Assembly: GCA_004431415.1 (NCBI GenBank)
Contig: QPMI01000263.1
Span: 1 to 64,000, forward strand
Direction: 5' to 3'
From: Cyanophora paradoxa CCMP329
Taxonomy: Eukaryota; Plantae; Glaucophyta
Length of the DNA stretch: 64,000 nucleotides
In this document: positions 1 through 57,000 of the stretch, one piece after another
Layout: every line of letters starts with the position of its first letter
Position numbering within the stretch: position 1 is the first letter of the stretch
Program-made: the position numbers and the translations under genes
The notes under the pieces: generated by a model
Told to the model about the DNA's origin: nothing
The model's database searches: none
Seen by the model: the letters and a program-made list of their open reading frames with translations, nothing else

Positions 1-3000
1 CTCGAGCTCCGCTCCAGCGGCCCCCGCTCGTGGGCGCCTCCCGCGGCGCCGCGGCCGGCGCCGGCCGCGAGGGGGCACAGAGGCGAAAGGCGGCGCACAT
101 TCTGCGGCGGGGTCCGGGTCGAACCCCGACGGGACTGTTTCGGGGGTACGCGCACGGCGAGGAGGGCGACGTTTTCCGGCGGCGATGTACGCGAAGGGCT
201 CGCCCTCGGGGCAGGTCGAGGGAGTCTGCACGGGGGTACGTGATCCAGGGAGGGGGGGGTATGTGGATCCGAAACGCGGCCCGGCGCGGGAGGTCGGAGG
301 GGAGGAGGGCAAGATCGGCCGCTTGTTGAGCTCCGCGAGCTGCGGAGGGGGGTACGCGAGGGTACGGAGGGTGGGGGGGGGTACGCGGACCTGGAGGCGA
401 TCGCGGAGGAGGGGGTCCCGATGGAGGCGGGGAGAGGAGGGTACAAAGGCCGCAGCGAACCTGCGCGGCGTCGGCGGCGGGGAGGGGGGAGGGAGGGGGA
501 GGGGGGAGGGGGGGGAGGGGGGGGGGGGGGGGGCGGCGGGCGGGACGTGCGCGCACTGCGGCGCGGGCGCCGAGGTCCGAGCCGGAGGGGCAGCGGACGG
601 GTCGTTGGAGCCCTGAGGGAGGTCGGCGCGAGCGAGCGGCTAGAGGCACAGGAGAGGGGCGTGGCTATATATAGGCACCGAGCACTCGGTCCAGCATCGG
701 ACGCGGCGGCGCGCGAGGGCGCGCACGACCCGCGCCGCGCCCCCGCGTCCTGGAGACGTCGACGTCAGGGCTAGGGGGTACGGGCATGTGTGTGCGCGCG
801 CACGCGGGGAGCACCAGAGGAAGAGGAAAGGGCCGCTCGTCGACTCCACGTCGCACTACGTATACATTGGCATCGAAGGAGAAGAAAGATGGCGGAAATT
901 CGAAGTTGAGGGCCCGGGCGGGAGCCGAACCGGGACTCGGGGAGAGCGGAGAGCGCCGCGGGGCGGCGGCCGAGCGGCGGCGGCGGGCGTCGTCGGCCCC
1001 GGCCGCAGCCACGGACCTGCGCCCGAATCGAATCGAATCAAATCGCGAGAGCAAAAGATCGAGGGAGCAGATCAAATTGAATTCAAAGCGCGCGGGCCTT
1101 CTGGCGACGGTGAGGGAAGGAGGCGAGGCCGGCCTCCAGCAGCGCCCCGCTCGTGAAGTCCGCTGCGCGCGGGGCCTTCTGTGAGGGGCCCGGAGGCGGA
1201 GAGAAGAGAAGGGAAGGGCCGCCGGGCTAGGTCTGGCCAGGTTTTGATCTCGCTTTAGGTGAAAGAGAGAGGAGCGATTTGTAAGGGCTTTTTTACGCCA
1301 GGCCTAGAGGCGAAGACAATGAGGGCGGTCGAGGTCTACTAGGCTAGGTCAAGATAAAGGCGGTCTAGGTCTAGAAGGCGGTTTAGGTCTGGCTCTGGAT
1401 CTCGCGGCGCACCGAACTGCTGCTTGAGGAGAAGCCCTGCATCTCATCGTCGAGCTCGGACCGCTCCCGCCACACCGGAACACCGCCCTGGGGGGAATGA
1501 GGAGGGCGGTGGGCGGGTGGGGAGGGGGAGGGGGGCGGCGCGCCTGCCGAGGCGCGGGCGGCGGCGAGCTCCGAGCGGCAGCGCTCGGAGAGCAGGCGGC
1601 GGGGATACCGCGAAGACCACCGCGCTCGCTCGCTTCAGGAAGTCGAGCGGCTAAAAATAGGGACGGTTAGAGGGGACTCGGAGCTGGGGGGGGGGGGGGG
1701 GGCGAAGGTCTGGGCTGACCGAGGCGGGTGCCCCCTCGGCGCCCGCCGGCGCCTCCTCGTCCTCCCGTGCGAGGCACTGCGCCCCGGCGCGGCCCAAAGC
1801 CCGACGTCAAAAGGCGTAATAGAAGGCCTAATAGGCCTAATTTAATAGAAGAAACTAAAGGCCTAATAGAAGAAGCTAGAGGAACACGCGCCGTCACGTG
1901 GGCCGCCTCCAGGCCCTCCCGCAGGCGCGCCGCGAAGGCCGCCTCGCCCTCACCATCCCCGCAGCTGCCCGCGCGCGCTCAGGGAGGGGTACAGGCCTAG
2001 GGAGCACGGGGGCCGGGGGGGTACAGGGTACCAGATGTAGACGTCGCAGAGGCGCGACGCGCGCTTGAGGACCGCGAGAAATGCCACGTCGCGGTGGGCC
2101 TGGGTACAGGAATTCGAAATCGCGGGGGGTACACGGGAACGCAGGAGGCGCGACCTGCAGGACGGTCTGACGGTCGGCGCCCTCGCCCACCCCGCGGCCC
2201 GCGTCGGCCCCTGCGCATGCGCATCGGAATCGATTCGAAATCGAATGTGCAAGCGAGGCGCGAGGGCGGCGCGTTTGCGTACCCCTGGCGATGAGGGCCG
2301 TGCAGACGTCGAGCATCTCGGGCCCGAAGGCGACGGCGTGGTGGAGCGGGGTGCGCCCCTCCCCGTCCGCCTCGCTGGGCCGGGTTGAGCGGGGACCCGG
2401 GGGCGCCAGGGCGGCGGGGCGGACTCGAGGGCGGGGGCGGGGGCGGCGCGCGCGAGGCGGAGGGCCGTCAGGCGGAAGCCCAGGCGGCACGCCTGCGCGG
2501 GGCCGGAAGTGAGAGCGAGGCAAACAGGGAGAGCGGAGGAGCGCGCCTCGCGGAGGGCGAGCGACTCGTCCTTGGGGTCCACATCCGCCCCTCCCTTCTC
2601 GCGCGCCTCCTCCACCCGCCGGTACGCCCGCCACAGCGCCTCCGCCGCCTGCGGAGGCGCGCGCGCGCGCGTGAGCGAGCGCGAGCCGGCCCTTATCTAA
2701 TTTAAAATTGAAGGCGGGACGGACGGCGGGGATGGTGACTTGGGCGATGTGCGGGTCGAGGCGCTCCTCGACGGGTACGCCTCGCTTAGGGCGAGGTCCA
2801 GCCCATCCTGCGGGCGGGCGGCCGCAGGCGGTTCAACAGTTCGCATGGCTTCGATTCGAGCGGGGCTCTAGATCTGGCATGATTTAGACGGGCGGGCGGG
2901 CGCGCCGGAGGAACGGGGGCAGGGTCGGGCCGTTCTGACGTCCGTCCTCCGCAGAGAGAGCCCTCGATGATCTGGAAGTTGATCGCCTCGGTGATCCTGC

Positions 3001-6000
3001 GGCGCGCCAGTGGGCGGGCGCCGCCGCGGGGCGGGATCATAGGGGCGAGGGGCGCACGCTTTGGCGCGCTCGGCGCGCTCCCGGCGCCGCGAGGGGGGCG
3101 GCCCCCGCGCCGCGCGCAGGCCTCGACCTCCTTCTCCAGCAGCCACCTTCGCGATCGCGATCGCGATCGTGTCAGTTACTAACGGCCGGCCTCGAGGGTC
3201 GAGAGCGGCGCGCCAGATGACGTCACGGTTGTTCATGAACTCCTGGATCCCGTTGTCCAGCCCGTCCCTGCGTCCGCATGAACTCCCAGTTCGACGTATG
3301 CGCCACCTGCGCCCAGTTTCATACGAATGCATTCATAAACAGAAAATCGGACCGGGCGGGGCGTCTACCTGGTAGAGGGGCGGCCGTGCCCCAAGAGGGC
3401 GTCCCGGCGAATTCCCAGAGGATCTGAGCGAGGTCGCGCCGGTTCGGACCGGATCTAGAGCGGGAATCGACGTGAGAACCGCGCTTGCCTTCAGCATGGG
3501 CAGCGGGCTGGGGTCCGCGCCCCGGTTCGTCTTCGTGACCAGCCGCAGGGCGAGCTCGGGAACCCGGTGACGAACTCGGCCATCTTTCGAGAGCGTGCGT
3601 GCGCGTGAGGCAAATGAAAGGGCGGGGGGAATTCGAAGCTTTAAATTTGAGAGCCGCCGGCGCCGGCGCCGCACCGCCTCGGGCGAGGCGCGCGCGAAGA
3701 CGGCGCGGAGGAGCGGCTCGCTGCGGGAGCGGACGGCGGCGCGGAGGGCGCCGGCGTCGAGCGCGGCGCCCCGCGCGAGGAGGAGCTCGGCGAGGGGCAG
3801 GCCCAGCGGCGACTCGAGGGCCGCCTGCAGGGCCGTCCGGGGCCGGCCCTCCGGGTCCTCTTGCCCGCGGTCCACCGTCCACTCGTGCAGCCTCGCGTGC
3901 ACGGCGCTGCCCCACGCGTCCGAGGACGGCACGCGCTCGAGGAGGTAGCCGGCCAGCGTCCAGACGTTCCCACGGCCGGGTCCTCGTCGGGCGGCGCCCC
4001 GGCGTCCAGCAGCAGGCGCGCCATCTCCAGCGTGCTGCGTCGGTCCTCAAGTCAGCCTCAAGCTTGAAGGGGCCCACAGGCACGCACTAGGCGACCATCT
4101 CTTCGTCGGGGGCTCCCCCTGCAGCGGCCGCTCGAAAGGGTATGGCTGCGACTGCAGGGGCCACGGGCGCGGCCGGCGCGCACGAGTCGGGCCGCGGCTC
4201 ATGGTGGCCGCGCCGGAGGCACATGGCGGCCGCGAAGAGGGCGGCCACTCCTCCGGGCGCTCCGCCGGGCCCAGGTTCAAGGGGACGTAGGAGGGGCAGA
4301 CGCCGAGTTCCAGGGCGAGCCTGCAAACGTCGGCGGCTCAGCTGCGTATACAAGACGGGGCCGGCACCGGGCTCAAGCTTAAGCTCAGCACCTGACGAAG
4401 GCGGGGGAGCGGAGGAGGACGGCGACGGCGACGGCGGCGGTGGCGTGGGCGGTCCGCGGCAATGGAATGCCCGTCTCTTTGAGCGCCCTGGAACAAGGGC
4501 GCGGTTCAGGGCGAAAGCTGAAGGTGCGCGGCACCAAAATCAAAGCTGATCATGAACGCACCGCAGGAATTCGACGCCCTCGGCGCCGCGGGTGACTGCC
4601 TTGGCGAGGCAGCTCGTGCGGGCGCTCTGGTCGACGCCGCGCCGCGTGGCGTTGTCCTCCGCGAAGGCGTCCGCCCCGCGGCCAGCAGCAGCCGCGCCGC
4701 GGCGGCCACGAGGGCCGGGGCCTGCGACGCCCGCCCCACCGGCGAGTCCAGGACCTGGTAAGGCAGCTCTGCTGGTCGACAGTCTTTGGAGGGCGCGCGG
4801 GTCGGGCGGCGGGAGGGATCCGGAGGGCAGCCTGGCGAGGAGGGCCGCAGGGTGGGCAGGCTGCGGCGGAGCGCGGCGGCCTGCAGCGGCGAGCGGCACT
4901 TCTCGTACTGGCTGCCCTTCGACAGAGGCCACGCCACCGCGCTGGGTTGGCGGGGTCGGCGCCAAGCGCCAGGAGCGCGCGGGCCGCGGCGACGTGCCCG
5001 CGGGAGGCCGCCAGCCCGAGGGCCGAGCTGACCTTGGGCTGCGCCCCCTTCCCCCGCGGCCGCTCCACCGGCGCGCCGTGCCGCGCGAGGAGGCGGACGA
5101 GGGGGGCGGAGCCCGCCGCCGCCGCCAGCTCGAGGGCCGAGAGCACCCCCCGGGTCTCGGCCACCTGCTTCTCCAGCTGGGGCTGGGCGTCCAGGAGGGC
5201 GGCGAGGGCGAAGGGCGGGTCGAGCGCGGCCTCCACCCAGAACCGCGAGAGCCGCTCGTCGGCCTTGGCGCCCGCCTCGAGCAGCAGCGCCGCGCATTCG
5301 TAGTGGCCCCACGCGCACGCCGCCACGAGGGGAGTCTGCGATCGCGACCCGTCGGCTTCGGCCTCGGCCGGCGGTGCGGCAGGGATCCGGAGCGCGGGGA
5401 ATCAACCTACCATGAGGAGTACCGTCTCGCGCTTGCCGGAGTCGGACACTTCGACGTCGCCGACCATCGCGGAGGCGGGCGCGCCCCTCGCGAGCAGCAG
5501 CCTGCGCAGGCTCACGTTGGAATGCGCGGGACCGGGGCCGGGGCCGGGGCCGAGGCGGGGCGCGCGGGGCGGACCGGAGGCAGTCGGCGGCGCCGGCGCG
5601 GGCGGCGAGGGCGAGGCAGACGTCCAAAAGGCCGGCGGGCGGCGCGGGCAGCGCTCCAGCAGCATTTCCTGCAGGGGGAGGGGCGCGTGCAAACGTGAGG
5701 ACAAGGCACAAGGGACGAGGGGGGGGGGGGGGGGGGGGGAGGGAGGGGGGGGGTGAGGGGGGAGGAGGGGGGGAGGGAGGGGGGAGGGAAGGAAGGGGGG
5801 GAAGGGGGAGGGGGTACCAGGACGGCGGCGTGGCCGGCGGCGGCGGCGATCTCGAGGGGGCTGGCGAGGGCGCCGCGGCGGGCCTCGGGGGGCGACGGGC
5901 AGCGCTCGAGGAGCAGGGCGACGACGGGGGCGCGCCCCTCCAGCGCCGCGTACTGCAGCGCCGAGAACTGCGCGAGGCGGCCCTGCGGCGCCGGCTCGGA

Positions 6001-7778
6001 TCCGGCGGGAGGCGCTTTTCGGGTTCGGGGAAATCGAAGCTCACCTGGAGGTCCGCCCCGTCGCATCCCTGGCGCGCCGCGCCGTCAGCCGCCGCGCCGC
6101 CGGCCCGGTTCCCGTTATCTTTAACGTTCTAGATCTAGCCCCGCCCCCCGCACCTGGTCGAGGAGGAGGGCGACCGTCTCGACGCTGCCGGCCGCCGCCG
6201 CCGCCTCCAGCGCCCGCACCGCCACCTGTGGGGGCCCTCGGATCGAGTTCGAAGAAGGGGGAATCCGAGGGCCTCGCCCCGCGCGCGCCTCCCTGGATTC
6301 GCCGCCCTTCCCGGCCGCGAGCCCCTCCCAGTCGACCTCCTCGGGGTCCGAGCCGAAGGCCTTGAAGTACGGATCGGACAGGCGCGGGGCGGCGCGGCGC
6401 AGCGGGACGCGGGCGGCGCAGGGCGCGTCCAGTCGCGCGCCGGCCTCGAGCAGCGCCCGCGTGGCGGCGACGTGGCCGCCGGCGGCGGCGGAGAAGAGCG
6501 GCGCCCGCTGCTCGCCGTCCGCGTCGGCCCTCGCGCCGCACCCAAGGAGGTACCTGCGGGACCGTTTTGCAATTGAGGGAAGGGCGGTAGACGAATTCCA
6601 AGGGGGGTACGCCCCGCACCGGACGGAGTCGACGTCGCCCCTCGCGGCGGCCAGCACGAGGGGGCGCTGGGCGTCTCGCCAGGGGAGCTTGGCCGCGCGG
6701 CGGGCGGCGGGCAGGCCCTTTCCCTCCAAGAACCTGAGCGGCGGCTCTGAGCGGCGGCGCGCGCGGCCGGCGGCGCGCGGCGCGCGGCCCGCGGCGCACC
6801 GTACGGCGCGCTCGTGGGAGAGAAGGGCGGCGCAGGGGAGGTCGAGCAGGGCGGCGCCCGGCAGCGCCGCGCCGCGCTCCGCCAGCGCGAGGAACGCCTC
6901 CACGTGCCCCGCCTGGGCCGCCGCCAGCAGGGGGTCCGGCCCCGCCCGTCCAGCGCCTGGCGGGGCGGGGGGGTGAGGGGGCGGGGGTACATGCGTACAT
7001 GCACGGCGATGCGTGGCGGGGGCGGGGGGGGCGGGGGGGGGGGGGGGGGGGCGGGCACCTCGATGTCAGCGCCGAGGTCGAGAAGGAGGCGAGCGACGTC
7101 GGCGTGCCCCGCGGCGGCGGCGGCGTGCAGCGGGGAGGGGAGCGGCGCCCACGCCCCGTCGCGGTACCCGTCCAGCGGGGCCCCCAGCTCGCGCAGGGCC
7201 CGCACGGCCGCCGCGTGGCCGCGCCCCGCGGCGAGGCAGATGGGGATCCGCGGGGTTGGGGGCGGGGCGGCATCTCTGCCGCCGCCCCTCCGCGCAGCCG
7301 CATCCGCAGGGGCTTTGGGGGCCGCAAACTCCAGCTCGGCCAGGCCTAGGTCCAGCCCTGCGGCGGCGAGGGCCCTGCGGCGGCGCCCGCGCCGAAGTAA
7401 GAGCCGGAATCGAATCCGAATTCGAAGGTTTCTGGCCGCAGCGCGAGCGCACCTTAGCACCTCCACCGCGCCGGCCTCCGCGGCGGCGCAGGCGGCGGCG
7501 GAGAGCGACGCTGCGGATCTAGCTGCGCCGTCGCCCGCGCTCGCCAGGATCTCCCTGCAATCGTGGATTCGCGTTTACTTGCGCGCTGCACGTGCGGCGC
7601 GGCTGGCGAGCGCAGACCTGACTCGCGCCGCGTCGCCCGCCGCCGCCGTGTGCGCGAGGGGGCTTCGCGGGCTCTGCCGCCCGTCCGCCGGGGCCTCTGC
7701 GAGCTCCTCATCCGGTGCGTAATCGGACGGGTCGTAGTCCGGCGTGCCAGCTGCTGCGCATGCAGCCGCGGCCGCCAT
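1..7778 (-). CDS. Ankyrin-repeat protein with two divergent C-terminal TIR-like domains (paralog A); multi-exon, 3' end runs off the window start
   Basis: Start at 7778 (gccATGg). Ankyrin exons include PSPLHAAAAAGHADVARLLLDLGAD (~7060-7140), APLFSAAAGGHVAATRALLEAGA, SALQYAALEGRAPVVALLLE, ACAWGHYECAALLLEAGA and EGRTPLHHAVAFG (~2320-2365). TIR-like exons: DVYIC|CGDGEGEAAFAARLREGLEAAHVT (2045-1892), LDFLKRASAVVFAVS..SERCRSEL (~1650-1565), PVWRERSELDDE, and a second unit GPFLFLWCSP..VRCWTECS..AFVP..RDRLQ. All are collinear with paralog B. Several 1-nt indels must be assumed. Confidence 0.7.
2281..2560 (-). repeat. High-identity inverted repeat copy 1 (partner 13113-13400) inside paralog A
   Basis: The reverse complement aligns closely with 13113-13400, including two introns (e.g. 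gcgcgctcctccgct...ccctgtttg...cacttcc...gcag) and exons ACRLGFRLTALRLARAAPAPAL and GRTPLHHAVAFGPEMLDVC. Confidence 0.9.
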
Positions 7779-8174
7779 GGCCGCGGGCGTCTTTCGGACG
7801 ATTGCAGGGAGCTCGAGCGGCTGTACAAGCTATTTGTCCGCAACTCCTGTAGACTCGTCTGCTGCTGCTGCTGCTAGCGCTGCTGCTGCTGGCTCTAACT
7901 GCCGCGCTGCTGCCGCCGGCGCCTTTGATCAGAAGGCCGGTGAGCTTGAGCTAAGCTCAAGGCAGGGCCGATTAAGCTTTGAGGCTTGTAATCAAGCCAC
8001 ATTCAACAAGCTCAAGCTCGAGCTCGAGCTCGAGCTCATAGCTCTAAGCCACGACGGCTTGCGCCACCGGTACCTCGTTATTTCGCTGGATAAGGCAAAG
8101 GCTCCCTGCCGAGAGAAAAGGAGCGCGAGCGCGACCGGGTCGCACGTCGCGGCGCAGACGCGGTTCAGCGCGCC
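7779..8174. promoter_or_regulatory. Putative bidirectional promoter / 5' UTRs between the two ankyrin-TIR paralogs
   Basis: 396 bp between divergent ATGs (7778 minus, 8175 plus); lower GC, with (GCT)n and (GAGCTC)n tracts. Confidence 0.5.
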
Positions 8175-11100
8175 ATGGCGCCGGCCGCGGCCGCGGCCGT
8201 CGACACGCGAGACGCCGTCCAGGCAGCGATTCGGGGCGACGAGGAGGCAGTATGGTGCGGCCGCAACTAGCTCTGGAACGGCCTCGTTCTGATGACCTCG
8301 GCGCAGGCGGCTCCTGGGCCAGCTAGCGCTGCAGCCCGACGCCGCCGCTGCCGCCGCGGTCGAAATCGCTTCAACTGCGCATGCCGGCCGATCTAAATCT
8401 GCAGCTCCTCCCGGCGATGAGGACGGGAAGAAAGGTGATGTGCTGGCGGCGGCGGCGCGCTTCTGCGGTCTTCCGCTGGTCGAGTGCGCCCGCGCCCGAC
8501 CCGGCCCTGGGCCCGCGGCCGCCGTCGACGTCTCAGCGCGCCGCGCGCGAGCTCGCACCGATGTTCCGCGGCGCAGGCACATCCTGGAGACGGTGCCGGG
8601 GCTGCAGGAGCCGCAGCTGCAGCGCGCGGCGTGTGCGGCGGCGGAGGGCGGGCGCGTGGAGGCGCTGAAGCGACTGCTGGCGGCCCTCGACGAGCGGCGG
8701 GCCGCCGCGGCCGCGGCCGGGCAGCGGCCGCAGCGCACCCCGGTCGACGCCGCGCGGGAGTACCCGCACGTGCTCTTCTACGCCGCCCTAGGCGGCTCCC
8801 TCCCCGTCCTGCAGTCCGCCCGCTCCGGCCTCGAATTCCCTAGGCCTAGGCCTAGGCCTACTGCCGCCTCAGCTCTAGCGCCGCGCAGGTACTTGCTGGA
8901 GGAGCGCGGCGCGGCGCGCTGGAGGCACGTCCCGATCAAGGCGGACCCGGCCGCCGTCGACGTCCGAGCCGTCCTCTCCCCCCCGACTGCTTCGTCGAGG
9001 CCCTCGCGACCGGCCGCGGGTGCCCGCCCGCCCGCCCGCCCGCCTGCCCGCCCGCCCGCGAGCCGGCGAGCCCGCCGGCCGGCATCCACCCCAACGCGCG
9101 GCGCGCGCGCGCAGGGGGCCGCTGTCGGACGCGGTGGAGAGGGCGGCGCGGGAGGCGCACGGGGAGAACGGGCCCCTCGTCGCCGCCGCCTGGCGCGGCC
9201 ACGCGGACGCCCTCCGGCAAGCCCTGCGCATACCCGCCGCCTTTTTTCTTCTCCGGTGATGGTGGCCGGTGCGGCGCGCAGGCTGCTGGTGGACGCGGGG
9301 CTGCGGGACAAGGGCAAGGAGGAGCAGGGGGGCCGTCGCTCGTACCTGGATATGGATCCGGAGCCTGGGCGCGACCGCGAGGCAGCCGGGGCCTTCGCCG
9401 CCGCCGCCATCCACGGCCGCCTCGAAGCCTGCAGGCGCGCGGGCGCGCGCGGCGCCCTCGATCTCCAGATCTCCCGGCACATCTCCGCAGGGAATTGAGC
9501 GGCCCCCGCCCCGCCCCGCCCCGCCCGCAGGCTCCTGGCCTCTCTGGAGGAAGAGAAGAACAAGCCGCGCACGGCGGGCCTGCTCTGCATCTGCGCGGCA
9601 ATCGGGCAGACGGAGTCCCTGCGGTGCGCGGCCGCGGGGCCAGCGCAAAGGCCTTGGGCCCTCCCGTTCGCCAGCGCCGCAGCTGAATTTAGACCGCGGC
9701 AGGTACCTCGTCGAGGAGGTGGGGGCCGACCCCCGCGACCGGCGGCTGCCCCCCGGCGCGTGGGACGGCGAGGGCGACCTCGCCACCGTCTGGGCCGCCC
9801 GCGCCGCCCGCGCCGACGCCCTCCGCTATCTCGCGGCCCGGGGGGTGGCCCTCGGGCCTGATCCTGAGAGCTCCAAGGCAGGCCGCCGCGTCGCCGGGCT
9901 TTCGACTTAGCTTCGATCGCGACCCGCCGCTCACAGCGCGCCGCCCGCCCGCGCGCAGGCGAGCTCGAGCTTCGACCCGTATGACCCGTTCGGGAGGAAG
10001 CCGTCGGGGGCGCTGCAGGCCGCCGCCGCCGCCGGCAGCGCCGAGTGCCTCCGCGTCGTGCGCGCGCCCTGCCCGCAGCGGCCTCTGAATATAAATACGA
10101 GGCCCACGCTGCCCTCCCAGATCGCGGAGCTCGACCCTGCCGCCTTCGCGGCGGGCAAGGACGAGGCTCTCCTGCGGGTCGCTGCCGCGCCGCCTCCCCC
10201 CGCGCCCCTCCCCGACACCCGCCTCGACGCCGTCCGGTGCTCACGGCCCCGCGCGGCCCGCGGCCGATTAAGTACACAGTATTCCAATTAATTCTTCTCC
10301 GCGCGCAGGGCGCTGCTGGAGGCGGGGGCGAGCACGGGCGACCCGGCGGCGCGGGACGCGACGAGGCCCCCCGGGGACCGCTGCCTGCGGACGCCCCTCC
10401 ACGCCGCCCTCGCGGTCGGCAGCTTTTCTTCGCGGGAGGCCGTCCTGCGCGGATACGGACAGGCGGTGCGGCGAGCGCGCCTGCCTTGATAAGATTTATC
10501 GGCCTAGAGCGCGACTGCCCCTCGAGTTCCGCCCTCGCCCCCCCCCCCCCCGGCCCCCGCCCCCCCCCCCCTGCCTCCCCCCCCCCTGCCTCCCCCCCTT
10601 CTGAATTCCCTTCGACTTACCCTCCCCTACCCCCGGGCCCCGTCCCCCCTCCCCCCGGCCCGAATCCCCTTTGAATGACCCTCCCCTCCCCTCCCCTCCC
10701 TCCCCCCCCCCCCTAATCCCCACGAATCTCTTCGAGATACCCTCCCCTCCCCCGATCCCCCGTTTCTCTCTTCCCTACGGCGCTAGCGTCCCCCCCTGCG
10801 CCCCCTTCCCCCCCCTCCGCCCCTCTTTCCCCCCCCCCCTCCCCTTGAATAGCCCTCTCCTCTCCCAATGACCGCCCCCCCTCTCCTTTGAATAGCCCTC
10901 TCCTCTCCCAATGCCCCCCCCTCCCCCCCCCCCCCACCCCCCGTTCCTCTCGTCCCTGCACCAAGCTGCAGTCCCCCCACCACCGCATCCCCACCCTCTC
11001 ACGCCCCCACCCCGCATCTCGCAGGCACCGAAGCCGGTATTGGAGCCCCACCCCGGCGTCGTCAGGTCGGGCCCCCCGTCACGGCGTCCTCGCAATGCTA

Positions 11101-14100
11101 TCGCGACTGCTGAAGCTGAAGTCGCGGCGCTGCCGCCCGCCCGCAGGCTCCTGGCGGAGGCGTCGAGCCCGAGCGAGCTCAACGCTCTGGACGTGGCGGG
11201 CAAGGCCCCGCTGCACCTCGCCGCGGCCTGCGGGTCCCTCGACGCCCTCCGGTCAGTTCAGGAGCGGCCCGGCGCTGCTTTAAATTTCAGACCGGCGCCG
11301 CCTCCGCAGCGCGGTTCTGGACGCCGGGGCCGACGTGGAGTGCCTGGACGGGGGCACGGGCGAGACGCCGCTGCACGCGGCGGCGGGGGCGCTGCAGGCC
11401 GGCGCCGTGCGGCTGCTGCTCGAGCGGGGCGCGGACGCGAGGGCCGAGGACCTCGGGCGCGCGACGCCGCTGCTCCGCTGCGGCGCCGCGCTCCTCGAGC
11501 GCCCGCTGCCGCGTAAGGACGGCGGCGGCGGCCTGAACGCGGAGCCGGGGGAGGTGACGGAAGAGGGCTGGCGGCTGGCCGCCGCGATGCGGGCCTCGGC
11601 CCTCGACGCCGTCGACGCGCTGCTCGCGGCCGGCGCCGACGTCAACGCCGCCCGCGGCGCCGACGGCGCGACGCTCCTCGTCCTGGCGGCCGCGTCGGAG
11701 GCGGGGCGCGACCCCGGGTTCCTCGGGGCGCTGCTCGACCGCGGGGCCGACGTCAACGCCGCCGCCGCGCCAAAGGCCGGCGCTGGCGCCGGTGAGGACG
11801 AGGCGCGCGATCGCGGCCGCGGCGCCGGCCGCGGGCGGCGCGATGGCGGGGTGCGGGGCACGGCGCTGGCCGTCGTGGCGGGGCTGAGCACGAAGGAGGG
11901 GGTCGCGCTCCCCCTCGAGCTCGTCCAATTCCTCCTCTCGCGGGGCGCCGACCCCAACGCCGGCCCCCGCTCGGCCCGGCCCATCGCCGCCGCCGCCGAC
12001 CAAGTCCGGACCGACGCTGCCGTCCTGCAGGCCCGCGACCGCCCCGGCCCCTCCCGCCTCGCTCGTTCTTCCTCGCCTATCCGGCCCCGCAGGCGCTGCT
12101 GGAGGCGGGCGCCTCGCTGGACGCCGAGGTACCCTCGTTCCTGTGGAAGGGCCCCCCCGCCCTCTCGCTCCTCGCCACCGAGAGCGCAGCCGCCCGCGAG
12201 TGCGCATATATATGCATGCGCCCCATAAGAGCCTTCAAGGCTTCGAGGCTCTCTAGATCTCTGAGCTCTGACTATATAAACGCGTCGCGCATGCGCCTCA
12301 TAATTATAATTATAAAAGCCTCGAGGCTCTTTCTGAGGGCGGCGGCGGGCCGCAGGTGCCTCCTGCGGGGGGAGGCGGCGCGGCTCTCGGCCCCCGGCGC
12401 CCCGCGCCCCGCCATCGAGCGCGCGCTCGGGGCCAACCCGCTCCTCGAGGAGGGCAGGCGCCGGGTGCGCTCGAGCTCGAGCTCTTTAAATTTCTGGGCC
12501 TCCCCCTCTAGATTTATGCATAGCCGCCTCCCTCCTTTTCCCTCTTAATCAGCCGCGGGCCGGGCCGGCCGCGGACCGCAGGACGCGGCGATGCTGCCGA
12601 CGACGGGGCTGCCCTTTGGGTGCGCCGCGGGCTTCGGATCCGACTCCGTCCCCTTTCATTTGAATTTGATATTCACGCACCGGTACCCCCCGGCCCGCAG
12701 GCTCCTGGCGGCGGCCTTCGTGTCTGCCATCGAGGGGCGCAACGACCTCACCGCGTGCGCCGCGCCCTCGCTATTTATATACCGAACTCCCGAGCGCCGC
12801 TGAGCGCCAGCCGCGCGCCTCGCAGCCTGGCGCTGGACCTGCTCCTCTGCTGCGAAGGGCCCCTTCGCGAGCGAGACTTCCTCCTCTTCGCCTCTCCGGC
12901 CCGCCCCTTTACTATTGGATTGGATTTGCTCTCGTCCCATCTGAGGCCGGGCCCGGGGCAGATGGCGCGGACTATTCCGAGCAAGGAGGAGACCGAGCGG
13001 CTGCTGCGCGGCGTAAAGGGCGTGGCCGCCCTCGAGGGGCGCTTCGAATTCGACGGCGAGGGGCCCGCGCCCGAGGGGCCGGCCGGGCCGACGCCCGCCC
13101 CGCAGCCCGCCGCCGCCCTCCGCGAGGCGCGCTCCTCCGCTCCTCCCTGTTTGACTCTCATTCTCACTTCCGCCTCCGCAGGCGTGCCGCCTGGGTTTCC
13201 GCCTGACGGCCCTCCGCCTCGCCCGCGCCGCCCCCGCCCCCGCCCTCGAGTCCGCCCCGCCGCCCCCCGCCGCCCCTGGGTCCGATCCCCGCTGAGGCCG
13301 GCCCAGCGAGCCGGACGCGGAGGGGCGCACCCCGCTCCACCACGCCGTCGCCTTCGGGCCCGAGATGCTCGACGTCTGCGGCGCCCTCTTCGACCGGGGT
13401 CGGCCCTCCTGCCCTTTGAACTGAAATCTAAACGAACCTCAGTATACATTAACTGAATTTAAACGGCTCTTAGACCGGGGTCGGCCCTAGGCCTAGGCCT
13501 CCTGCTCTCAGCTCTCGCCCCTCAGTATACATATTTCAATTCGAACGCGTCGTTGTTTTGCAGGGGCGGAGCTGACGGCGAGGGCGCTGGACGCGACGCG
13601 GGACGCGGCCTTCCGGCGGGCCCTCAAGGAGCGCGCCGCCCTCCGCCAGGTCTTCATCAGGCGCGCCGCCCAATTGCAAACCAGACTGCTTCATTTCATT
13701 TCAAGCTTAGCTTCTTGACTTCTTTAACCAAATTAAACCCACGACCCGATGTGTAACTTCCTTTCAAGCTTAAGAGTTGACTGCGCGCTCGGGCTCGCAG
13801 CTACGGGCACAAGCCGCCCGAGGTGGCGGCCTTCGCCGCCCGCCTCCGGGACCGCCTCGAGGCCGACGGCGTCATGGTGCCCCGGCCCTCCCAGCTCCCG
13901 AGCTTCTTTACATGCCATGATGCCCTAATTATGATCCTGACTGCCGCGGCCGGCGCGTGCGCAGTGCTGGGTGCGGCTCGATCCGAGCTCTGATCATGAC
14001 CTCCGGACCGCCGGGCCGGCGCCGACGACGTACCCCTCTGATCGCGAGAGGCTCGCGATCGCAGATGGACGAGATGAAGGCGACGGGCATCCAGGCCGGC

Positions 14101-15998
14101 ACCGAGGCCCGCACCCGCCCCTGTACCCCCCGTCCTGCGCCCGAGGCCCTGCCTGACTCCGTACCCCCGCCCCGCAGTGGAGGGAGGAGATCGGGCGCGG
14201 CCTGCGCGCAGCAAAGGCGGTCGTCTTCGTCGCGTCGCCGGTAGGTTTAACGCACACGTACCCCCCTCCGCTTCACCCCCTCCTCAAACCTCGCGATCGG
14301 GCCGGGGCAGCACTCGTGCGGGTCGGACTGGTGCATGCTGGAGCTCTCGCGGGCGCGGGACCTCGGCAAGGCCCTCGCCCCCGTCTGGCGCCTCCGCTCC
14401 GAGCTCGACCCCCGCGCAGCCGTCCGCTTCCGCCCCGCCCCAGGACTCGGTGTACATGTAGCCCCTGCTGACGGAACCGGCAGACCCTCCTGGCCGGCCT
14501 GCACATCGCGGACTTCACGACGCGCGCACCGGTACCCCCCATTGCTCGGAGCATCCCTTAACACCCCCCCCCCCCCCCCCCCCCCGCAGGGACGAGCTCT
14601 TCGAGTCGGGGTACCCTGACTTCCTCGCCGGCCTCCGCGCCGCCCTCTCCGCCGCCGGCGCCGTCGAGAGCGGTACGTACCCCCATCGCGCGCGCCGTTC
14701 CGTTCCCTCTTCGTCGAATTCGAATTCGAATCCGCTGACGCGGGGCAGAGGGGGGGCCGGAGGAGGCGGCCCGCGCGCTGCTGGCCCGCCCGCACGCCCG
14801 CTGCGACCCCGCCGCCGGCCCGTTCTGCCTCCTCTGGTGCACCCCCGAGGTGCTTCCTGCGCCCCGCCCGCTGCTCCACCCCGCTCGCCCCCCCCCCCCC
14901 CCCCCCCCGAGCCTGTACCCCCCAGGACGCCCCCCGCATGCACCCCGTCCTCGACGCGGCGGCCGCGAGCGGCGTGCGCTGCTTTGTCGACTGCTCGGTG
15001 CCCTGCCCTTCGGATTTTCTACAGCAAATCATAAAATTAAAAATTTGCACACACCTCTTAACACTGGTCCACAACAACCGCAGGACGGCCCGCCGGGCGC
15101 GGAGGCGTCGGCGGCCCTCGCTGCCTGCTCGGCTTTCGTACCCCTCCTCTCGCCTTCCTCCGCCTCGTCCCCCGCCCTCGCCCTCCGCCTTCAGGTCCGT
15201 TCGAACTTGCGCCCCGTACCCCTCCACGAGTTCGAGCCCCCCTCCCTCCCTCCCCGCAGGCTGCCGCTGCCCGCTCCGTCCCTGTCCGCCCCCTCGTCCT
15301 TTCCGGCGTGCAGGCGAGTCTGTTCCCATCCATTCTCATCTATTGTAGCCGCGGCGAGCCTCGCGATCGGGCGCAGGTGCCCTTCGCGCTGGAGTACAGC
15401 CTCGCGCAGACCCGCGGCTTCCCGCTCCTCGCCGCCGGCCCCGCGGAGGATCCGGAGGACCTTCCCGTCCGTCCGGTCCCGCACGATTAAGGACCCCGTC
15501 TTGAGCAGGGATGGGTAATCCTCGGCCCCTCAGGTCGTGGGCGCGCTGCTGGCGGCCGCGGGCGCGGGGGGTCCTAGGCCTGCCGTGCAGGCAGGCGGCG
15601 CCCCGGGAGGCGGTGGCCACGGGTCTTCGGGGGTACATGTACAGGCGGTCTCTGGAAATCCGAAGCTTGAGGCCCTCCGCGCCGCGATCGCGGAAGCGGA
15701 CGCCGACCTCGCGCGGGTTCGAATCCGAGCCGCAGCTTCCCTTGCGCGGACTTCACGCAGACTCAACCCGTGCTCGCAGTTGGAGGCGCGGGCGAGGGAG
15801 CTACAGCGGGCGGCCGCGGGCGGGGGCCCCGGCGGGGCGGCCGGCGCGGGCTCCGCCCCCACCCCAACGCCTGCTCATGCTCCGGTTGGCGACGCGCCGG
15901 CCGCGGGGCTGCCGGGCGCCGGAGCCGGCTCCAGGCAGTCGCCGCAACCCCCGGCCCGGGCCCCTCCTTCGAATTCGCGAGCATGCGCCCTCATGTAG
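8175..15998 (+). CDS. Ankyrin-repeat / TIR_2 / TIR-like / coiled-coil / CaaX protein (paralog B), multi-exon
   Basis: cgccATGg at 8175 (MAPAAAAAVDTRDAVQAAIRGDEEAVW|RLL). Ankyrin motifs: DVAGKAPLHLAAACGSLDALR, TGETPLHAAAGALQAGAVRLLLERGAD, LLAAGADVNA, EGRTPLHHAVAFG. Spliced TIR from 13650 to ~14420: VFIS|YGHKPPEVAAFAARLRDRLEADGVM|CW|MDEMKATGIQAGTE|WREEIGRGLRAAKAVVFVASP|HSCGSDWCMLELSRARDLGKALAPVW. Second TIR-like unit ~14800-15470. Ends SNSRACALM* (TAG 15996-15998). The continuity of the N-terminal exons into one gene is inferred. Confidence 0.75.
13113..13400 (+). repeat. High-identity inverted repeat copy 2 (partner 2281-2560) inside paralog B
   Basis: Direct visual alignment with the reverse complement of 2281-2560. 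Confidence 0.9.
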
Positions 15999-16059
15999 CC
16001 TTCTTCATTTCAGCTGATCGACCGCGTTCGTTAGCCTTCATTTTAGGGGGGGCAAGGGT

Positions 16060-16944: not shown

Positions 16945-17918
16945 AATCGATCGATATCGCGCCCGGTGCCCTCGAGCAGGTGCGCATGCAGCCCCGACCG
17001 CGTTTCTTGGCATAAAAATTGCATCGCAATTTTCCTGCCGATTTCCGACGTCGATGTCGCTTCGAATTCTTGCGATCGTCCGCGTGGAGCAGATGGATGC
17101 GCGCCCGAGCCGGATTGATCACCGCGAGCGGTATGAGGTGCGCGTAATTATAAGCTCGCGCAGCTCGCAGTGAATATCCGAGAAATTCGGATGAATTTCC
17201 GCGAGCGCACAGGAGTACTTCGAGCTGCGCCGCGAGGTGAAGAGCCTGGAGGAGCGGCTGGCGGCGAACGAGCAGCGGCGGGCGGCGGACGAGCAGCGGC
17301 AGGCGGCGGACGAGCGCGCGCTGCGGACGCTCCTTGCACACATCCGCGACCACCCGAACAGCGACGACAGCTGCCTCTACACCGAAGACGTCCTGAGTGC
17401 GCGCCCTGCGCCAGGCTGGGGTCGCAAAATGTATTCGGATTGCAAATATGATTCTGAAAGACTCGCGGCCGCGCGCAGAGGTGCTGGAGCGTGATCGAGA
17501 GCCGCCCCCGAAACCGCGCGCCGTGATCGAAAACCCAACCGCGGCGAAAGTGCGCAATTGCAATTTTTGCTATCTCGGAACAAGCGATTGCATTCGAATT
17601 CGAAGAATACGAAGAGATATCGAATTGTTTTCATCCACCCTCAATTTAATTCTGTGCGCGCAGCTCGCGCAGTATCTCGATAATCAGTCGGTGTGCTTCG
17701 TGACGGCGACGGGGGCGAAATATCACTTTGCCCGCTGTGCCGCGCTCTACGAGGGACGGGACTTGAAGCACAAGGACTACCACCGCGCCCACCCTGGGAT
17801 CACCGGCTATGTCTTCGGGAGCGAGAAAGAGATGCACATGGGGGCGAAGGCCATGGATGCGCCGACTGGCCATGGGCCCGGGAGCAAGCTTCAAGGCTGC
17901 GGCATGTGCATCATCTAA
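16945..17918 (+). CDS. Small hypothetical protein: coiled coil + C-terminal Cys/His metal-binding-like motif; 5' end uncertain
   Basis: GT-AG exon chain ESIDIAPGALEQ|MDARPSRIDHRERYE|EYFELRREVKSLEERLAANEQRRAADEQRQAADER...|...|LAQYLDNQSVCFVTATGAKYHFARC...GCGMCII* (TAA 17916-17918), inside a lower-GC island. Confidence 0.55.
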
Positions 17919-25668: not shown

Positions 25669-26889
25669 ATGGCGGGACACATTGCGCCCCCGATGGATTG
25701 GCAGGCGGAGCACAGCATGGGGGTGCGTACGACCTGCCATTCGCGCTGGCCGGGGGCGCATTCGAGCTATCACGCATTCGCTCGACGGTCGCTTGATTAC
25801 GAGGGCCCCGCGCCTCGGAGCCGCCCCTGAACCACCTCGCCGCCCGGATGACAAGCGCTCATCGACGTGCGCAGACGTCGATTATGGCGGTGCAGTTCAA
25901 CGGTGGCGTCGTGCTGGGCGCGGACTCGCGGACGACTACAGGTACGCCCACGCCTGGCCGCGCCCGCGGTTGCCCTGCTTGACGGGTCATCGCCGCGCCC
26001 TAGGATCGTACATCGCCAACCGCGTGTCGGACAAGATCACACCCGTGTCGGAGCACATATACTGCTGCCGCTCCGGCTCGGCCGCCGACACGCAGGCCAT
26101 CTCCGACTACGTGAAGTACTACACTGCCCTCCACAGGTTCGTGCGGCAGGGAATCCTCTGGCGCGCCGCCCCTCACCCGCTTTGCAGTGCCGAGACCGAC
26201 ACGAAGCCCGAGGTGCGGACCGCCGCGGCCATCTTCCAGGCGCTCTGCTATCATAACAAGGTCCGCCCGCCGCTCCTCGTGGTCGGCCGCGGCACCGACG
26301 CAAAGCGCAGGACAACCTGTCCGCCGGCATCATCGTCGCGGGCTGGGACAAGCGGAACGGCGGCAGCGTGTGGTCCATCCCGATCGGTGGCGCCCTCGTG
26401 CGGCAGCCCTTCACCATCGGCGGTGCGGCCGGCGGGCCCCCTGTTCCCTTCCTTCCCGCTGAACCTCTCCGCAGGCTCTGGCTCGACTTACATCTACGGC
26501 TACTGCGACGCGACGTACAAGGAGAACATGACGAAGGAGGAGTGCGAGACCTTCGTCACGAACGGTGCGCCGCCAGCCTCCGACGCCGCCGCCGCGCCGC
26601 GCGCCCCGCCGACGGCGAGCAGCGCTCTCGCTTGCGATGTCGCGGGACGGCTCTTCGGGCGGCGTGATCCGGTTAGTCACCATCGACGAGAGCGGCGCCT
26701 CCCGCCGCATGGTCCCCGGCAACCGGGTCCGCTCCCCGCTTCCTTTTCCGCCACCCGCACGCTGACCCTGCTTCTCTCCTTTCTTCTTTCCTTCTTTTCC
26801 CTTCGCAGCTCCCGGCCTTCTACGGTGCGGGGCCCTGCTTTTCGCCCCCCAGCGCCCCTCGGTCTGACGCTCCCGCAGAGCCCTACTAA
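25669..26889 (+). CDS. PSMB6: 20S proteasome subunit beta-1 (caspase-like, PSMB6/PRE3/PBA1), 9 exons
   Basis: Spliced product MAGHIAPPMDWQAEHSMG|TSIMAVQFNGGVVLGADSRTTT|GSYIANRVSDKITPVSEHIYCCRSGSAADTQAISD...GGSGSTYIYGYCD...LAMSRDGSSGGVIRLVTID...LPAFY|EPY*; all introns GT-AG. Confidence 0.96.
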
Positions 26890-27297
26890 TCCCGGCGGCC
26901 GCCGCGTCCGCCGGTCCCTTCCTCTGTCCCCTCTCTCTCCTCCCTCCTTTCCTCGACGTCCAACCCCACCCGCGCACGTCCTCTCGGCCTGTGTATAACG
27001 ATTTCAGGGCCGCATGCACACGTCCGCGCAAGCGTGCTGCAGCTTTCTCATGCAACTGGCCCTCGATACCCCACAATGCACTCATCAATGTTCACCACAC
27101 TAGAACTGCCATAAGCTCGCATGAACTACCATAACCTAGGATCAGAACCGTACAGAAATAAACCAAATTCAACTAGAGGCGGAGGCGCACTATAGCTAAG
27201 CCTCCATCGCCCGCGGCTGCCTGCGCAAGGCGGAGAATGCGGACTGCACGCAACTAGCGAGAGCTTAATCGCGAGGGGCCTCGGGCAGCCTATATAG

Positions 27298-54099: not shown

Positions 54100-57000
54100 T
54101 CACTTCTTCGCCTTGCCGCGGCCCTTCTTCGCCGGAGCAGGTGCCGGAGCCGCTGCCTCCTCCGCTGGCGCCTCCTCCTCCGCCGCCGGCGCCGCGCGCT
54201 TCTTCCCGCGCCCGCCGCCAGACGTGGCTGCCGCCTTTCGGCCCCGCTTGCCCTTCGCCGGGGCCTCCTCCTCCTCCTCCTCGGCCGCCGCCGCCTCGGA
54301 GGGAGCCTCGGCGGGCGCGGGGGCGGGCGCCTCGGCGGGCGCCGGCTCCTCGGCCGCCGTCTCCTCCTCCTTCTTCTCCTCCTCCTCGGTCTCCATGGGC
54401 GCCGCCGCCGGCTCCGCCCCGCCGTCCTCGTCGCGCTTCCGCCGCGCGCGCACGCCGGCCTCGTCGCCGGCGCCGGCCGCGAGCGCCGCCGCCCCGAGGG
54501 CGCCGGGGCCGCCTCCGCCGCCACCGCCTCCGCGCTGATGGGCTTCGGGATCGCTGCGGGGCGGCGGCGTCAGGGCGAGGGGGGCCCGCGGCGGGGGCGC
54601 CCGGCGGGCCTGCGGTGGAGACGCGGGCGATCTCCTCGGCGATGAGGGCGCTGGTGCCGGCCTCCTCCGCCGCCTGCTGCTTCCGGATCTCCGCCAGCTG
54701 CTTCCCGAACTCCGCCTGCATGCTCTGCGCCTGCGCGGGGGTCAGGCCGGCCGGCCGGGCGGGGGGCCGGGGCGGGGCGCGCCTCCTGGAAGGTTTGGAC
54801 GCTCTTGTTGTAGACGAGGACGGACATCTCGTGGACGTCGGCCACCTCCTGCACCTGCGCCGCCCCCGCCCCGCTCGGCCCCGCCCCCGAGGGGGCCGGC
54901 GGGGCGCGGCCGCACCGCGTCCGGGGCCGGCTTGGTGGAGATCTCGCGGGTGGCGGGGAAGCGCTCCGAGGGGACGAGCTGCAGCTTCGTCGGGCGCGCC
55001 AGCATCTGGCTCAGCGCCGGTGCCAGCTCGTAGCTCTGCGGGCCGGGCGCGCGCTCAGGGCGGGACTTGGGTGCGGGCCGAGAGGGGCGGGGCGGGGCGG
55101 GGGGGCGGGCCTGCTCGAAGAGGGACTTGCGGCAGAAGATGTAGAGGCCGAGGCGGGCGCGGGAGAGGGCCACCACCAGGCGCCGCACGTCCCTGCGCCG
55201 GCCCGGGCCGGGCCCGCACGTCAGCCCAGCCCCCGCCGCGCGGCACCGCACAGCGCCCGCGCACCGGATGTGCCCGATCGCGCGCGTGCGGACGAGCGAG
55301 AGGAGCACGTCTGCGGGGCGCGTGAGGCGCGCCGGGGGGCAGGGGGGCGGGGCGGGCGGACAGTCGTTCTGCTGGCCCTGGTACTTGTCGACGGTGGAGA
55401 TGCACGCCGGCTGCCCGAAGAACGGGTTCCACGCGCACCGCTGCGGCGCTCTGTCAGGGCGGCGTGGGGGAGGGGCGGGGCGGGGCGGGCGGGGCGGGGC
55501 GGGCCTGGGCGATGACGTCCTTGAGGAGGTGCTTCTGGCCGTTGTACGTCGTCAAGATGCTGATCCGCGACGCCGGGTACCTGCGCAGCGCGTCAGGCGG
55601 GGCCGGGGCCGGGGGTGGGGGCGGGCGGGAGCGGCGGGGCGGGGGCGGACCCGAGGAGGCGCATGTACTGGTAGACGGCGACGATATACTCGGCCTCGGC
55701 GAGGTTCTGGTAGAAGAAGGGGGTCGGGTCCGACTCGCCGACGCCGTTCAGGGGGCCCACGTCGATGAGCTGGAAATCGTGCGCGAAGCTGCCGCCCCCG
55801 CGTGAGGGGCGGGCGGGGGCGGGGCGGGGCGGGGGGCGGGGGGCACCCGGCGTTGGCGAGGCGGTACTGGGAGTCGGAGTGGACGTTGGGGAGGTTGCCG
55901 AGGAACTTGTAGCGCCAGGAGTAGAGGTCGGCGATGCTCGGGCGGGCGCGCCCCTGCAGGTTGAGGTTCACCGTCGGCACCCCGAGGCGCACGAAGCGGG
56001 AGAAGAGGGACTGGTCGAGGTGGGAGTACTTGGCGAAGGCCAGGTTCTTGATGACGGGCGGCAGCTGGTGGTGGTCCCCGATGAGAACCACCCGCTTCAG
56101 CCGGCACTGCCCGTCCTGCTGGTTCTGCAGCAGCAGCGGGATGAACGTCTCGATCTCCATGATCTGGGCCGACTCCTCCATCAGCACGTTGTCGTACTGC
56201 GCGCCCGGCGTCAGCGGTGGGGGCGCGCGCAGGGCGGGGCGGGGCGGGGCGAAAGGCGCCTTGAAGCCCATGTTGACGAAGTCGCGGCGCTTGAGGGCGG
56301 CGTGCGTGCAGGTCATGGCGATGATCTTGGCCTGCTTGGAGATGAGGTAGTTGCCGCGGTCGCGCATGTTGCGCAGCAGCTCGAACGGCCGGCACATCTC
56401 CAGCTCCTCGAAGATCTGCGCCCCGCCGCCGTCAGCCACGCCCCCGCCGCCGCGGCGCGCCGTGCGCCGGCGGCTTGCCTTGCGGATGTGCTTCATGCAG
56501 CCGTCGGCGGTGCGGAGGTCGCCCTCGTAGCTCTGGCCCTTGAAGAGGGGCTGGGGGGCGGTGCGGAAGAAGCGGGTGAAGGGGAAGAGCTCCTGGAGCT
56601 TGGCCGGCGTGCGCTCGGCATCAGGGAGGCGGGCGAGCTTGAGCTGGAAGAGCTCCCAGCGGGCCACGACGTGGAAGAGGTAGAAGTGCTGCGCCGCCTC
56701 AGCGGCAGGGGCGCGGGGGCCGGGGCGGGGGCGCGGGCGGGCGCGCCTGGGCGGTCTCGCAGGTGTAGGCGGCGTCGTCGGAGAGTTCGAGGCTGCGGGC
56801 GAGGCGGCCCACCTCGTCGAGGAACTCGAGCCGCCGCGCCTGCCCCGCACATGCCGCTCGGCACCGCGCCGCGGCGGGGGCGGGGGCGGGGGCGGGCGCA
56901 CGAGCATGTAGTTGACGCGGCCGGCGCGGGAGAAGTCCTTGTCGGTGGCGAGCTCCTCCTCGCCGGCGCCGAGGCGCAGCAGGTGGATCTCGTTGACGTC

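Follow-up and report, generated by a model that had tools for sequence, protein, structure and literature searches.

A divergent ankyrin–TIR gene pair of Cyanophora paradoxa as a candidate two-gene TIR signalling module

When one of two neighbouring ankyrin–TIR genes appears to hold a complete TIR pocket and the other has lost it, the question arises whether the two cooperate or are only linked. We addressed this question for genes A and B of Cyanophora paradoxa, located in a window of 64,000 nucleotides (the whole stretch of DNA that was analysed). Gene A on the minus strand and gene B on the plus strand diverge from start codons at 7778 and 8175, and the 396 bp between these codons (7779–8174) form a candidate common upstream region, in exact agreement with the divergent pair and spacer described in the initial annotation. 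In both genes ankyrins are followed by TIR1, a pseudo-TIR2 and a coiled coil; the layout proposed earlier, ankyrins and then two TIR-like units, stands, except that the second unit is a pseudo-TIR in A as well as in B. The four intron matches named there (IS/Y, GVM, VDCS and LRLQ sites and their counterparts in the other copy) are all genuine, and further introns common to A and B lie at LRE/AC, PAL/D and R/G and after the BB loop. The coiled coil, the CaaX box of B and a 289-nt tract common to the two genes came in addition to that description. The pair is indeed hidden from the open-reading-frame track, but it is present in the public gene set, where tig00001098_g7051 corresponds to A and tig00001098_g7053 to the 3' part of B. 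Pfam gave no NB-ARC or NACHT match in P0001, P0015, P0016, P0017, any paralog or the 5' exons of B, as expected from the earlier remark that no NTPase domain could be seen, and it detected no LRR or other extra domain, an integrated decoy included, in the A and B proteins. The possibility that ankyrin and TIR exons belong to separate genes was ruled out for B by one public model that spans both, with a single exon linking the last ankyrin turn to betaA of TIR1, and for A by P0016 and P0015.

The integrity of the two genes was assessed from spliced models, whose database searches ran one exon at a time; the joined models, with X at each break, served local analyses only. Gene A (tig00001098_g7051; 1–7778, minus strand), for which the evidence is a manual model, P0015, P0016 and DNA contigs, encodes ankyrins, a pocket-less TIR1, a pseudo-TIR2 and the start of the coiled coil in approximately 39 exons inside the window; the gene extends beyond position 1, so that its C-terminal end is outside the view. 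The assembled sequence of A carries about 50 indels, and the manual model, followed as far as the end of TIR1, carries X at 25 breaks, yet no stop was encountered in about 1,400 codons. DNA contigs restored the missing letters, nine coding breaks by position and others by length, and another contig contained the same 3' half with zero substitutions in shared exons and a frame open through TIR1 (P0015). The frameshifts of A, which the initial annotation had allowed might be real, are thus largely assembly errors, direct checking having covered all but four or five breaks (6936, 5632, 4790–4770, 1113). Gene B (8175–15998, plus strand; spliced model, g7053 and RNA-like runs) encodes degenerate ankyrins, an intact-looking TIR1, a pseudo-TIR2, a coiled coil and a CaaX box in 36 or more exons, with an open frame of about 1,450–1,500 aa and a single, unverified break at ~8977 within a C run. 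Over the 3' two thirds of the gene, covered by g7053, our model agrees with it residue by residue, except for in-frame segments spliced out in the public model. Both copies appear intact. The RNA-like runs contained 0.26–0.37 of words, against 0.37–0.40 expected from the B exons. RNA-like contigs covered B almost fully and A by one contig of 263 nt (depth 2.4, in one of three runs); such contigs cannot rank expression levels, and this pattern is unlike tight co-expression.

The ankyrin arrays of the two genes differ. The array of A (2263–7235, minus strand) is canonical, with at least 12 clear repeats according to a local HMM and Pfam on exons and P0016 (Ank_2, E = 1.6e-42). That of B (8577–13398, plus strand) is mostly degenerate: three repeats are clear and several weak, the Pfam Ank match (E = 7.6e-14) falls in exon 11311–12003, and the 5' exons gave weak or no ankyrin matches. 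No colinear alignment of the two arrays was obtained. The 289-nt tract, 89% identical in the DNA comparison and containing two introns, covers the last ankyrin repeats (2281–2559 on the minus strand in A, 13114–13400 on the plus strand in B) and is probably a product of gene conversion; outside it, no DNA alignment of A and B exceeded 55 nt.

Pfam TIR_2 matched the TIR1 of both genes. In B (13644–14672, plus strand, including a 6-nt micro-exon at 13965–13970) the match was strong (E = 3.5e-24) and the pocket complete, in keeping with the canonical domain reported before. It comprises the catalytic Glu (14341–14343, plus strand, aligned with AbTir E208), the alphaC aromatic (Trp, 14329–14331), the BB-loop Asp and Gly and an aromatic after betaD (Trp, 14386–14388); the alignment to AbTir (E = 3e-4) places B against W204/E208 and W227. 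Pfam on single TIR exons reached E = 0.21 at best, and single-sequence folding of the B TIRs gave a pLDDT of 45. The TIR1 of A (1098–2060, minus strand; alignments, and E = 4.1e-9 for P0015, the clean copy) has lost the betaA Ser/Tyr/His, the betaB Trp-x-Asp, the BB loop and the alphaB and alphaC Trp, with Arg in place of Trp at codon 1583–1581, four residues ahead of the Glu. The clean copy establishes that the loss of FISY and WxD..I..G..W, noticed earlier, is real and not a frameshift artefact. Retained are the catalytic-position Glu (1569–1571, minus strand; sequence and alignment), which is all that remains of the pocket, the Trp after betaD and the betaE Gln (1417–1419, minus strand; alignment). 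A was not, then, inactivated through loss of the Glu. A model of an A-type paralog TIR1, without betaB and with a low-confidence BB region, superposed on the SARM1 TIR with Z 15.4 and rmsd 2.5 Å over 122 residues.

TIR active sites span two protomers, one contributing the BB-loop side and the other the betaD/betaE side (10.1101/2022.05.07.491051; 10.64898/2026.02.03.703613). At the invariant positions of the BB region three A-clade proteins kept 2–6 of 17 and B1/B2 13 of 17, whereas between betaD and betaE the A-clade proteins kept 14–15 of 17 (A, 14) and B1/B2 8–9 of 17 (B, 9). A comparison of A1 with A2 shows drift in the BB region (12 of 29), whereas betaC–betaE has been held (46 of 59). 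Among 94 bacterial relatives 89 have the betaE Gln, as do the three complete members from Cyanophora; its position in B is occupied by His (14502–14504), and with SARM1 N679 the Gln agrees just in its spacing from Trp, with no residue-level match.

The second TIR unit is unlikely to serve as an enzyme or as an adenine-side donor, since Arg stands at the Glu position in A, B (15186–15188) and aligned paralogs and the aromatic after betaD is absent. It spans 14817–15440 (plus strand) in B, where Pfam TIR_2 gave E = 0.0035 for the isolated piece, and 250–1016 (minus strand) in A, where assembly indels are frequent (11 and 17 gaps against the DNA contigs). In B it is followed by a short predicted coiled coil (15666–15810, plus strand), suggested by sequence pattern and family alignment, and by a C-terminal CaaX box, CALM, with the stop (15984–15998, plus strand). 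P0004, P0008, P0009 and P0011 also have CaaX ends, and the A-type paralog P0017 ends in CTVM; no CaaX was seen at the predicted end of A's duplicate, and A's own end lies beyond the window.

The TIRs of A and B share 40% identity and fall into separate clades, one of A-type genes (support 100/99) and one of B with C-type genes (100/99). A sister grouping of A1 and B1 was rejected (p-AU 1e-82), which excludes a recent inverted duplication and makes the asymmetry, part of the original proposal, an old and conserved one. A search for further pairs in the genome found A2 (g12086) adjoining B2 (g12088/g12089) on tig00020610, as adjacency only; identities are 66% for A1–A2, 75% for B1–B2 and 39–43% between types. 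Because the clades are old and separate and A-type and B-type neighbours recur, the pair looks to have been duplicated as one unit. The clade pattern represents few independent events, and linked paralogs can be co-duplicated and yet function separately. Protein searches, in a method limited by word sharing and length, returned Cyanophora entries only, the ESM Atlas ankyrin clusters only, and searches of viral contigs and for A-type TIRs in metagenomes yielded nothing useful. In the literature search no paper was found on Cyanophora TIR or TIR-ankyrin-CaaX proteins or on intracellular defence-type signalling in glaucophytes.

We propose, with a probability of about 0.55, that A and B constitute a functional two-gene TIR signalling module. 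B would be the executor, because its TIR1 pocket for NAD+ and its BB loop are complete, and A a non-catalytic partner, having lost the pocket and kept the betaD–betaE face, with which head-to-tail TIR assemblies dock one protomer on the BB loop of another. A would probably bind B in a heteromer and control the timing of NADase site formation, whether it caps B or completes the active site there. The canonical ankyrin array of A is the likeliest sensor, and both proteins are probably membrane-tethered through the predicted CaaX seen in B and in an A-type paralog. The suggestion of a sensor or regulator paired with an executor is thus partly supported, by apparently intact genes, an old asymmetry, a repeated neighbourhood, the lack of NB-ARC and a BB-loop loss like that of plant sensors; an immune role for the module we infer.

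A stricter form of cooperation would be an obligate split enzyme in which the BB loop, pocket and Glu come from B and the betaD–betaE face on the adenine side from A, so that only the A–B heterodimer cuts NAD+. Its origin would be a complete ancestor, of a type still present in the genome (P0008, P0009, P0018), from which A and B each lost what the other kept. Such an enzyme would amount to an AND gate of two genes, tethered to the membrane and lacking NB-ARC, although we regard it as doubtful. A possible, if not favoured, explanation is that the paralogs share no mechanism, B being a homomeric NADase and A a scaffold-type pseudo-TIR kept in linkage by block duplication. B retains the adenine-stacking Trp after betaD (the AbTir W227 equivalent), its betaE His recurs in 4 of 94 bacterial relatives, the betaE contacts of AbTir are made by the backbone (10.1101/2022.05.07.491051), expression of A and B is apparently unequal and gene packing in this genome is dense (PMC6704402). 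Independent genes would not be expected, however, to show reciprocal surface conservation that persisted across a duplication with 25–35% protein divergence, nor would A retain precisely the TIR–TIR docking face.

Decay of A into a pseudogene next to a functional B is improbable. The indels, the scant RNA support and the few breaks outside direct checking would agree with decay; against it stand the letters restored by DNA contigs, the unsubstituted second contig open through TIR1 and the long stop-free frame. A2 and P0019, moreover, carry identical losses, which must then be old. Very unlikely, finally, is a cooperating pair devoted to non-immune signalling (stress, membrane or flagellar, through NAD-derived messengers). 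SARM1 illustrates that TIR NADases can work outside pathogen sensing, nothing ties the A and B genes to infection, and the flanking genes are housekeeping (proteasome subunit, Aquarius helicase). However, expanded repeat-TIR families with sequence exchange between neighbours are typical of immune receptor families, and the family of A and B appears to be of this kind.

The proposed module resembles, in part, several known systems. Like the plant paired TIR-NLRs RRS1/RPS4 and CHS3/CSA1, A and B are a divergent gene pair with a repeat domain as the likely sensor, one partner having the Glu and BB loop and the other a degenerate BB loop with the Glu possible; in the plant pairs a lost BB loop identifies the sensor partner (PMC13732033; PMC13725568). 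Unlike the plant proteins, which have an N-terminal TIR, a central NB-ARC, a C-terminal LRR and, in many sensors, an integrated decoy, A and B lack NB-ARC and LRR, no integrated decoy was found by Pfam, and their C-terminal TIRs form a doublet ahead of a coiled coil and CaaX. The DE surface of plant sensors varies strongly, and for the plant pairs the active site has been modelled as executor–executor (PMC13732033, PMC11298796, PMC13725568), whereas the pocket-less A keeps its betaD–betaE face better than the executor B, and the split-enzyme reading would put the site across A and B instead of between two executor TIRs as in RRS1/RPS4. The NADases SARM1 and AbTir are comparable in that B aligns with AbTir, the A-type model superposes on SARM1 and SARM1 has an N-terminal repeat domain and a C-terminal TIR. 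Both, though, are homomeric and lack a second pseudo-TIR as well as a linked dead paralog, and SARM1 uses ARM and SAM domains. Similar in architecture are uncharacterised oomycete proteins (PMC9153377) and marine contigs L081, L087 and L101, in which ankyrins directly precede TIR_2 as in A and B, with a further, weak TIR-like unit in L087. The marine TIR1s belong to the complete type, and pairing or half-dead forms are undescribed in either group. Bacterial TIR_2 proteins of gut Clostridia and marine Gammaproteobacteria (L001–L080) share the BB-loop octapeptide, betaA motif, Glu and betaE Gln at 28–39% identity to the Cyanophora TIR1s, but were found by the BB-loop motif and so do not prove closest kinship; unlike in A and B, their TIR is N-terminal and fused to TPR, MORN or other domains.

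If the pair cooperates, sensor/executor TIR pairing would have arisen independently in a glaucophyte from other parts, namely ankyrins, a tandem TIR, a lipid anchor and no NTPase, and control of TIR enzymes by pairing would be a general solution beyond plant NLRs. The complete, pocket-only and docking-face-only versions of one TIR family in this genome form a natural series of small soluble domains with which to ask whether two genes can share a TIR active site. The A/B pair may give a first handle on defence-type intracellular signalling in glaucophytes.

The initial annotation had described two head-to-head genes with a 396-bp spacer, and the start codons of gene A (1..7778, minus strand) and gene B (8175..15998, plus strand), at 7778 and 8175, were indeed 396 bp apart in GC-rich, eukaryotic, intron-dense DNA. 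Spliced models were searched exon by exon; joined versions, in which each break was filled with X, served only for local scripts. When one of the TIR exons of B (39 residues) was searched, all nine matching proteins came from the EukProt gene set of Cyanophora paradoxa, which had been built with BRAKER/Augustus, trained on RNA-seq, from the PacBio assembly of a genome that is probably haploid (PMC6704402). The best match, tig00001098_g7053 (P0001), equals B from residue 508 onward and agreed with our manually spliced model at each of the TIR introns, down to a 6-nt micro-exon; the sole difference was in-frame segments that P0001 treats as introns. The public model of A is tig00001098_g7051 (P0016), and the window start cuts A off where its coiled coil begins.

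Both genes encode, in the same order, an ankyrin array, a first TIR unit (TIR1), a second, pseudo-TIR unit (TIR2) and a coiled coil. Pfam TIR_2 matched TIR1 of B (E=3.5e-24), TIR1 of A (E=4.1e-9) and, when searched by itself, TIR2 of B (E=0.0035). The reported lack of an NTPase domain held throughout, with no NB-ARC, NACHT or LRR detected by Pfam in any family member. An Arg occupied the catalytic position of TIR2 in all members aligned. B ended in CALM, a CaaX box, and such a box was also C-terminal in family proteins P0004, P0008, P0009, P0011 and A-type P0017. The AlphaFold2 model of P0017 (pLDDT 82) contained two alpha/beta units, the first of which matched the SARM1 TIR (Z 15.4, rmsd 2.5 A, 122 residues), with betaB absent and the BB region disordered. 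The A ankyrin array was canonical, with 12 clear repeats, and closest to that of P0004 (32% over 847 aa); B ankyrins were degenerate and not colinear with those of A in the alignment. The sequences suggest that ankyrin arrays were shuffled within the family. P0004 is a B/C-clade gene, and the A array (2263-7235, minus strand) was nearer to its array than to that of B.

Gene A carries apparent frameshifts which, if real, would have reduced the pair to a gene and a pseudogene. Contigs of X8, a short-read run whose contigs read through introns, differed from the assembly over 1-6000 by ~50 indels, mostly letters that the assembly misses (also given as ~50 in 1-4700). Nine coding indels in A were located with them (1430, 3101, 3256, 3265, 3380, 3402, 3562, 3968 and 4107), and several more were explained by the lengths of matching contigs. 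Breaks between 3583 and the end of TIR1 were filled by tig00000806_g4327 (P0015), which was identical to A in all exons in common over that interval and probably represents this locus again, at the end of an overlapping contig, or else a very recent duplicate. P0015 encodes the A sequence cleanly, and window 1-4700 may be an unpolished overlapping contig end. At the sites directly compared, the frameshifts of A are mostly not real; further breaks, outside that comparison, lie at 6936, 5632, 4790-4770 and 1113 in A and at ~8977 in B.

Seven runs, classed as RNA-like by an automated guess, contained 0.26-0.37 of the words sampled from 7400-16000; this share is near the 0.37-0.40 expected from B exons alone, so that transcription and splicing of B seem to extend over almost its whole length. 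On A, the listed contigs included just one clean RNA-like one, at 4794-5054 (depth 2.4), from one of three runs. The remaining listed pieces had 2-8 mismatches in 37-93 nt and are from paralogs or from the B copy of a shared tract. A looks weakly expressed in these libraries, where contigs show presence, not level. It is very unlikely that A is a decaying gene; with X at 25 breaks, its model had zero stops in 1,410 codons, and the pair is probably intact. RNA-like contigs at 678-739, 1116-1162, 1413-1478 and 1554-1590 derive from at least two A-like paralogs that are expressed (~88-90% DNA identity).

A TIR active site is shared between two neighbouring protomers, one contributing its BB loop, alphaB and alphaC and the other its betaD/betaE side (10.1101/2022.05.07.491051; 10.64898/2026.02.03.703613). 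W204, E208 and W227 of AbTir were conserved in TIR1 of B, in line with its description as canonical. TIR1 of A kept the Glu; the losses of FISY and WxD..I..G..W ascribed to it were confirmed, with Cys-Cys replacing the betaA Ser-Tyr and no Trp-x-Asp, BB-loop motif or alphaB Trp, and the alphaC Trp was Arg. Both faces were scored at the invariant positions of the complete-looking P0008, P0009 and P0018. Across betaB-BB-alphaB the A clade kept 2-6/17 and the B/C clade 13-16/17, whereas across betaD-betaE the A clade kept 14-15/17, B1 (gene B) and its relative B2 (P0013/P0010) 8-9/17, and other B/C members 9-13/17. TIR1 of B retained the post-betaD Trp, with His at the betaE Gln position. That Gln, matched to a solved TIR structure by spacing only, not residue-level mapping, was present in every complete member and every A-clade member, and absent from the seven B/C-clade TIR1s scored. 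Among bacterial relatives it occurred in 89/94 (His in 4/94); because this set was chosen by betaA and BB-loop motifs, the unbiased signal is limited to the Gln and other C-terminal positions.

In the TIR1+TIR2 tree, A grouped with P0017 and P0019, and B with P0013+P0010, P0003 and the P0004 group (support 100/99 for each). A forced sister grouping of A and B was rejected (p-AU 1.4e-82). P0017 (A2, g12086) and P0013/P0010 (g12088/g12089) are neighbours on tig00020610, so that the closest relative of A again lies beside the closest relative of B, a result that concerns adjacency. A and B, otherwise unalignable, share a 289-nt tract, 89% identical with two introns included (2281-2559, minus strand, in A; 13114-13400, plus strand, in B), which covers the last ankyrin repeats, adjoining TIR1. 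Its amino acid identity was higher for A1-B1 (86%) than for A1-A2 (79%) or B1-B2 (72%), pointing to probable gene conversion within the pair. Marine contigs, probably eukaryotic, carried ankyrin-TIR proteins with a complete TIR1, and the architecture is therefore not confined to Cyanophora; the metagenome search returned no A-type TIR outside it. Related complete-type TIR1s lay on L081, L083, L087, L101, L103 and L110, with ankyrins upstream in L081, L087, L101 and L103 and a weak second TIR-like unit in L087. A large bacterial TIR_2 family, mostly of gut Clostridia (L001-L080), shares its BB-loop octapeptide with the algal family and has fusions to TPR, MORN or unknown domains and mostly Asn at the usual alphaC Trp position.

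Just 3' of B, a small low-GC spliced gene (17094-17915, plus strand) encodes a coiled coil and a C-terminal His/Cys motif resembling a zinc finger; its last-exon frame had zero Pfam matches. An ORF at 48496-50583 (plus strand) gave weak leucine-rich-repeat matches, and no TIR exon was found near it. The window also holds genes for a proteasome subunit (25682-26995, plus strand) and the Aquarius RNA helicase (55555-59647, minus strand).

A and B are a real, old and repeated pair with a clear reciprocal pattern between A-clade and B/C-clade faces, which rests on few evolutionary events. We estimate a probability of about 0.55 that they are a functional pair. In it, B would act as the executor that cleaves NAD+, and A, itself non-catalytic, would dock on B through its conserved betaD-betaE face. 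Both proteins could be kept at one membrane by prenylation and their coiled coils, and assembly could be switched by a ligand of an ankyrin array, more likely that of A than that of B. Within such a pair, A might cap B or act as a sensor or, with slightly lower probability, complete the B active site as a split site; the sequence is compatible with either. That A and B are instead independent linked paralogs is less likely than a functional pair and about as likely as the cap or sensor reading by itself, and paired signalling of a non-immune kind is highly improbable.

Plant paired TIR-NLRs are divergently transcribed, and either the Glu or the BB-loop Asp is missing from their sensors (PMC13732033). 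The Glu is retained in some sensors whose BB loop is not intact, and the sensor DE surface is highly variable (PMC13725568). CHS3/CSA1 heterotetramers form via AE and BB contacts (PMC11298796). Oomycete ankyrin-TIR proteins have been noted as uncharacterised (PMC9153377), and we found no literature on an ankyrin-TIR family in Cyanophora. The A/B pair fits the divergent, half-degenerate logic of the plant pairs, but it has neither NB-ARC nor LRR and its domain order is reversed, so A and B are not members of that group. Judged by its sequence, the pair would be a form of paired TIR signalling that differs from those described so far.
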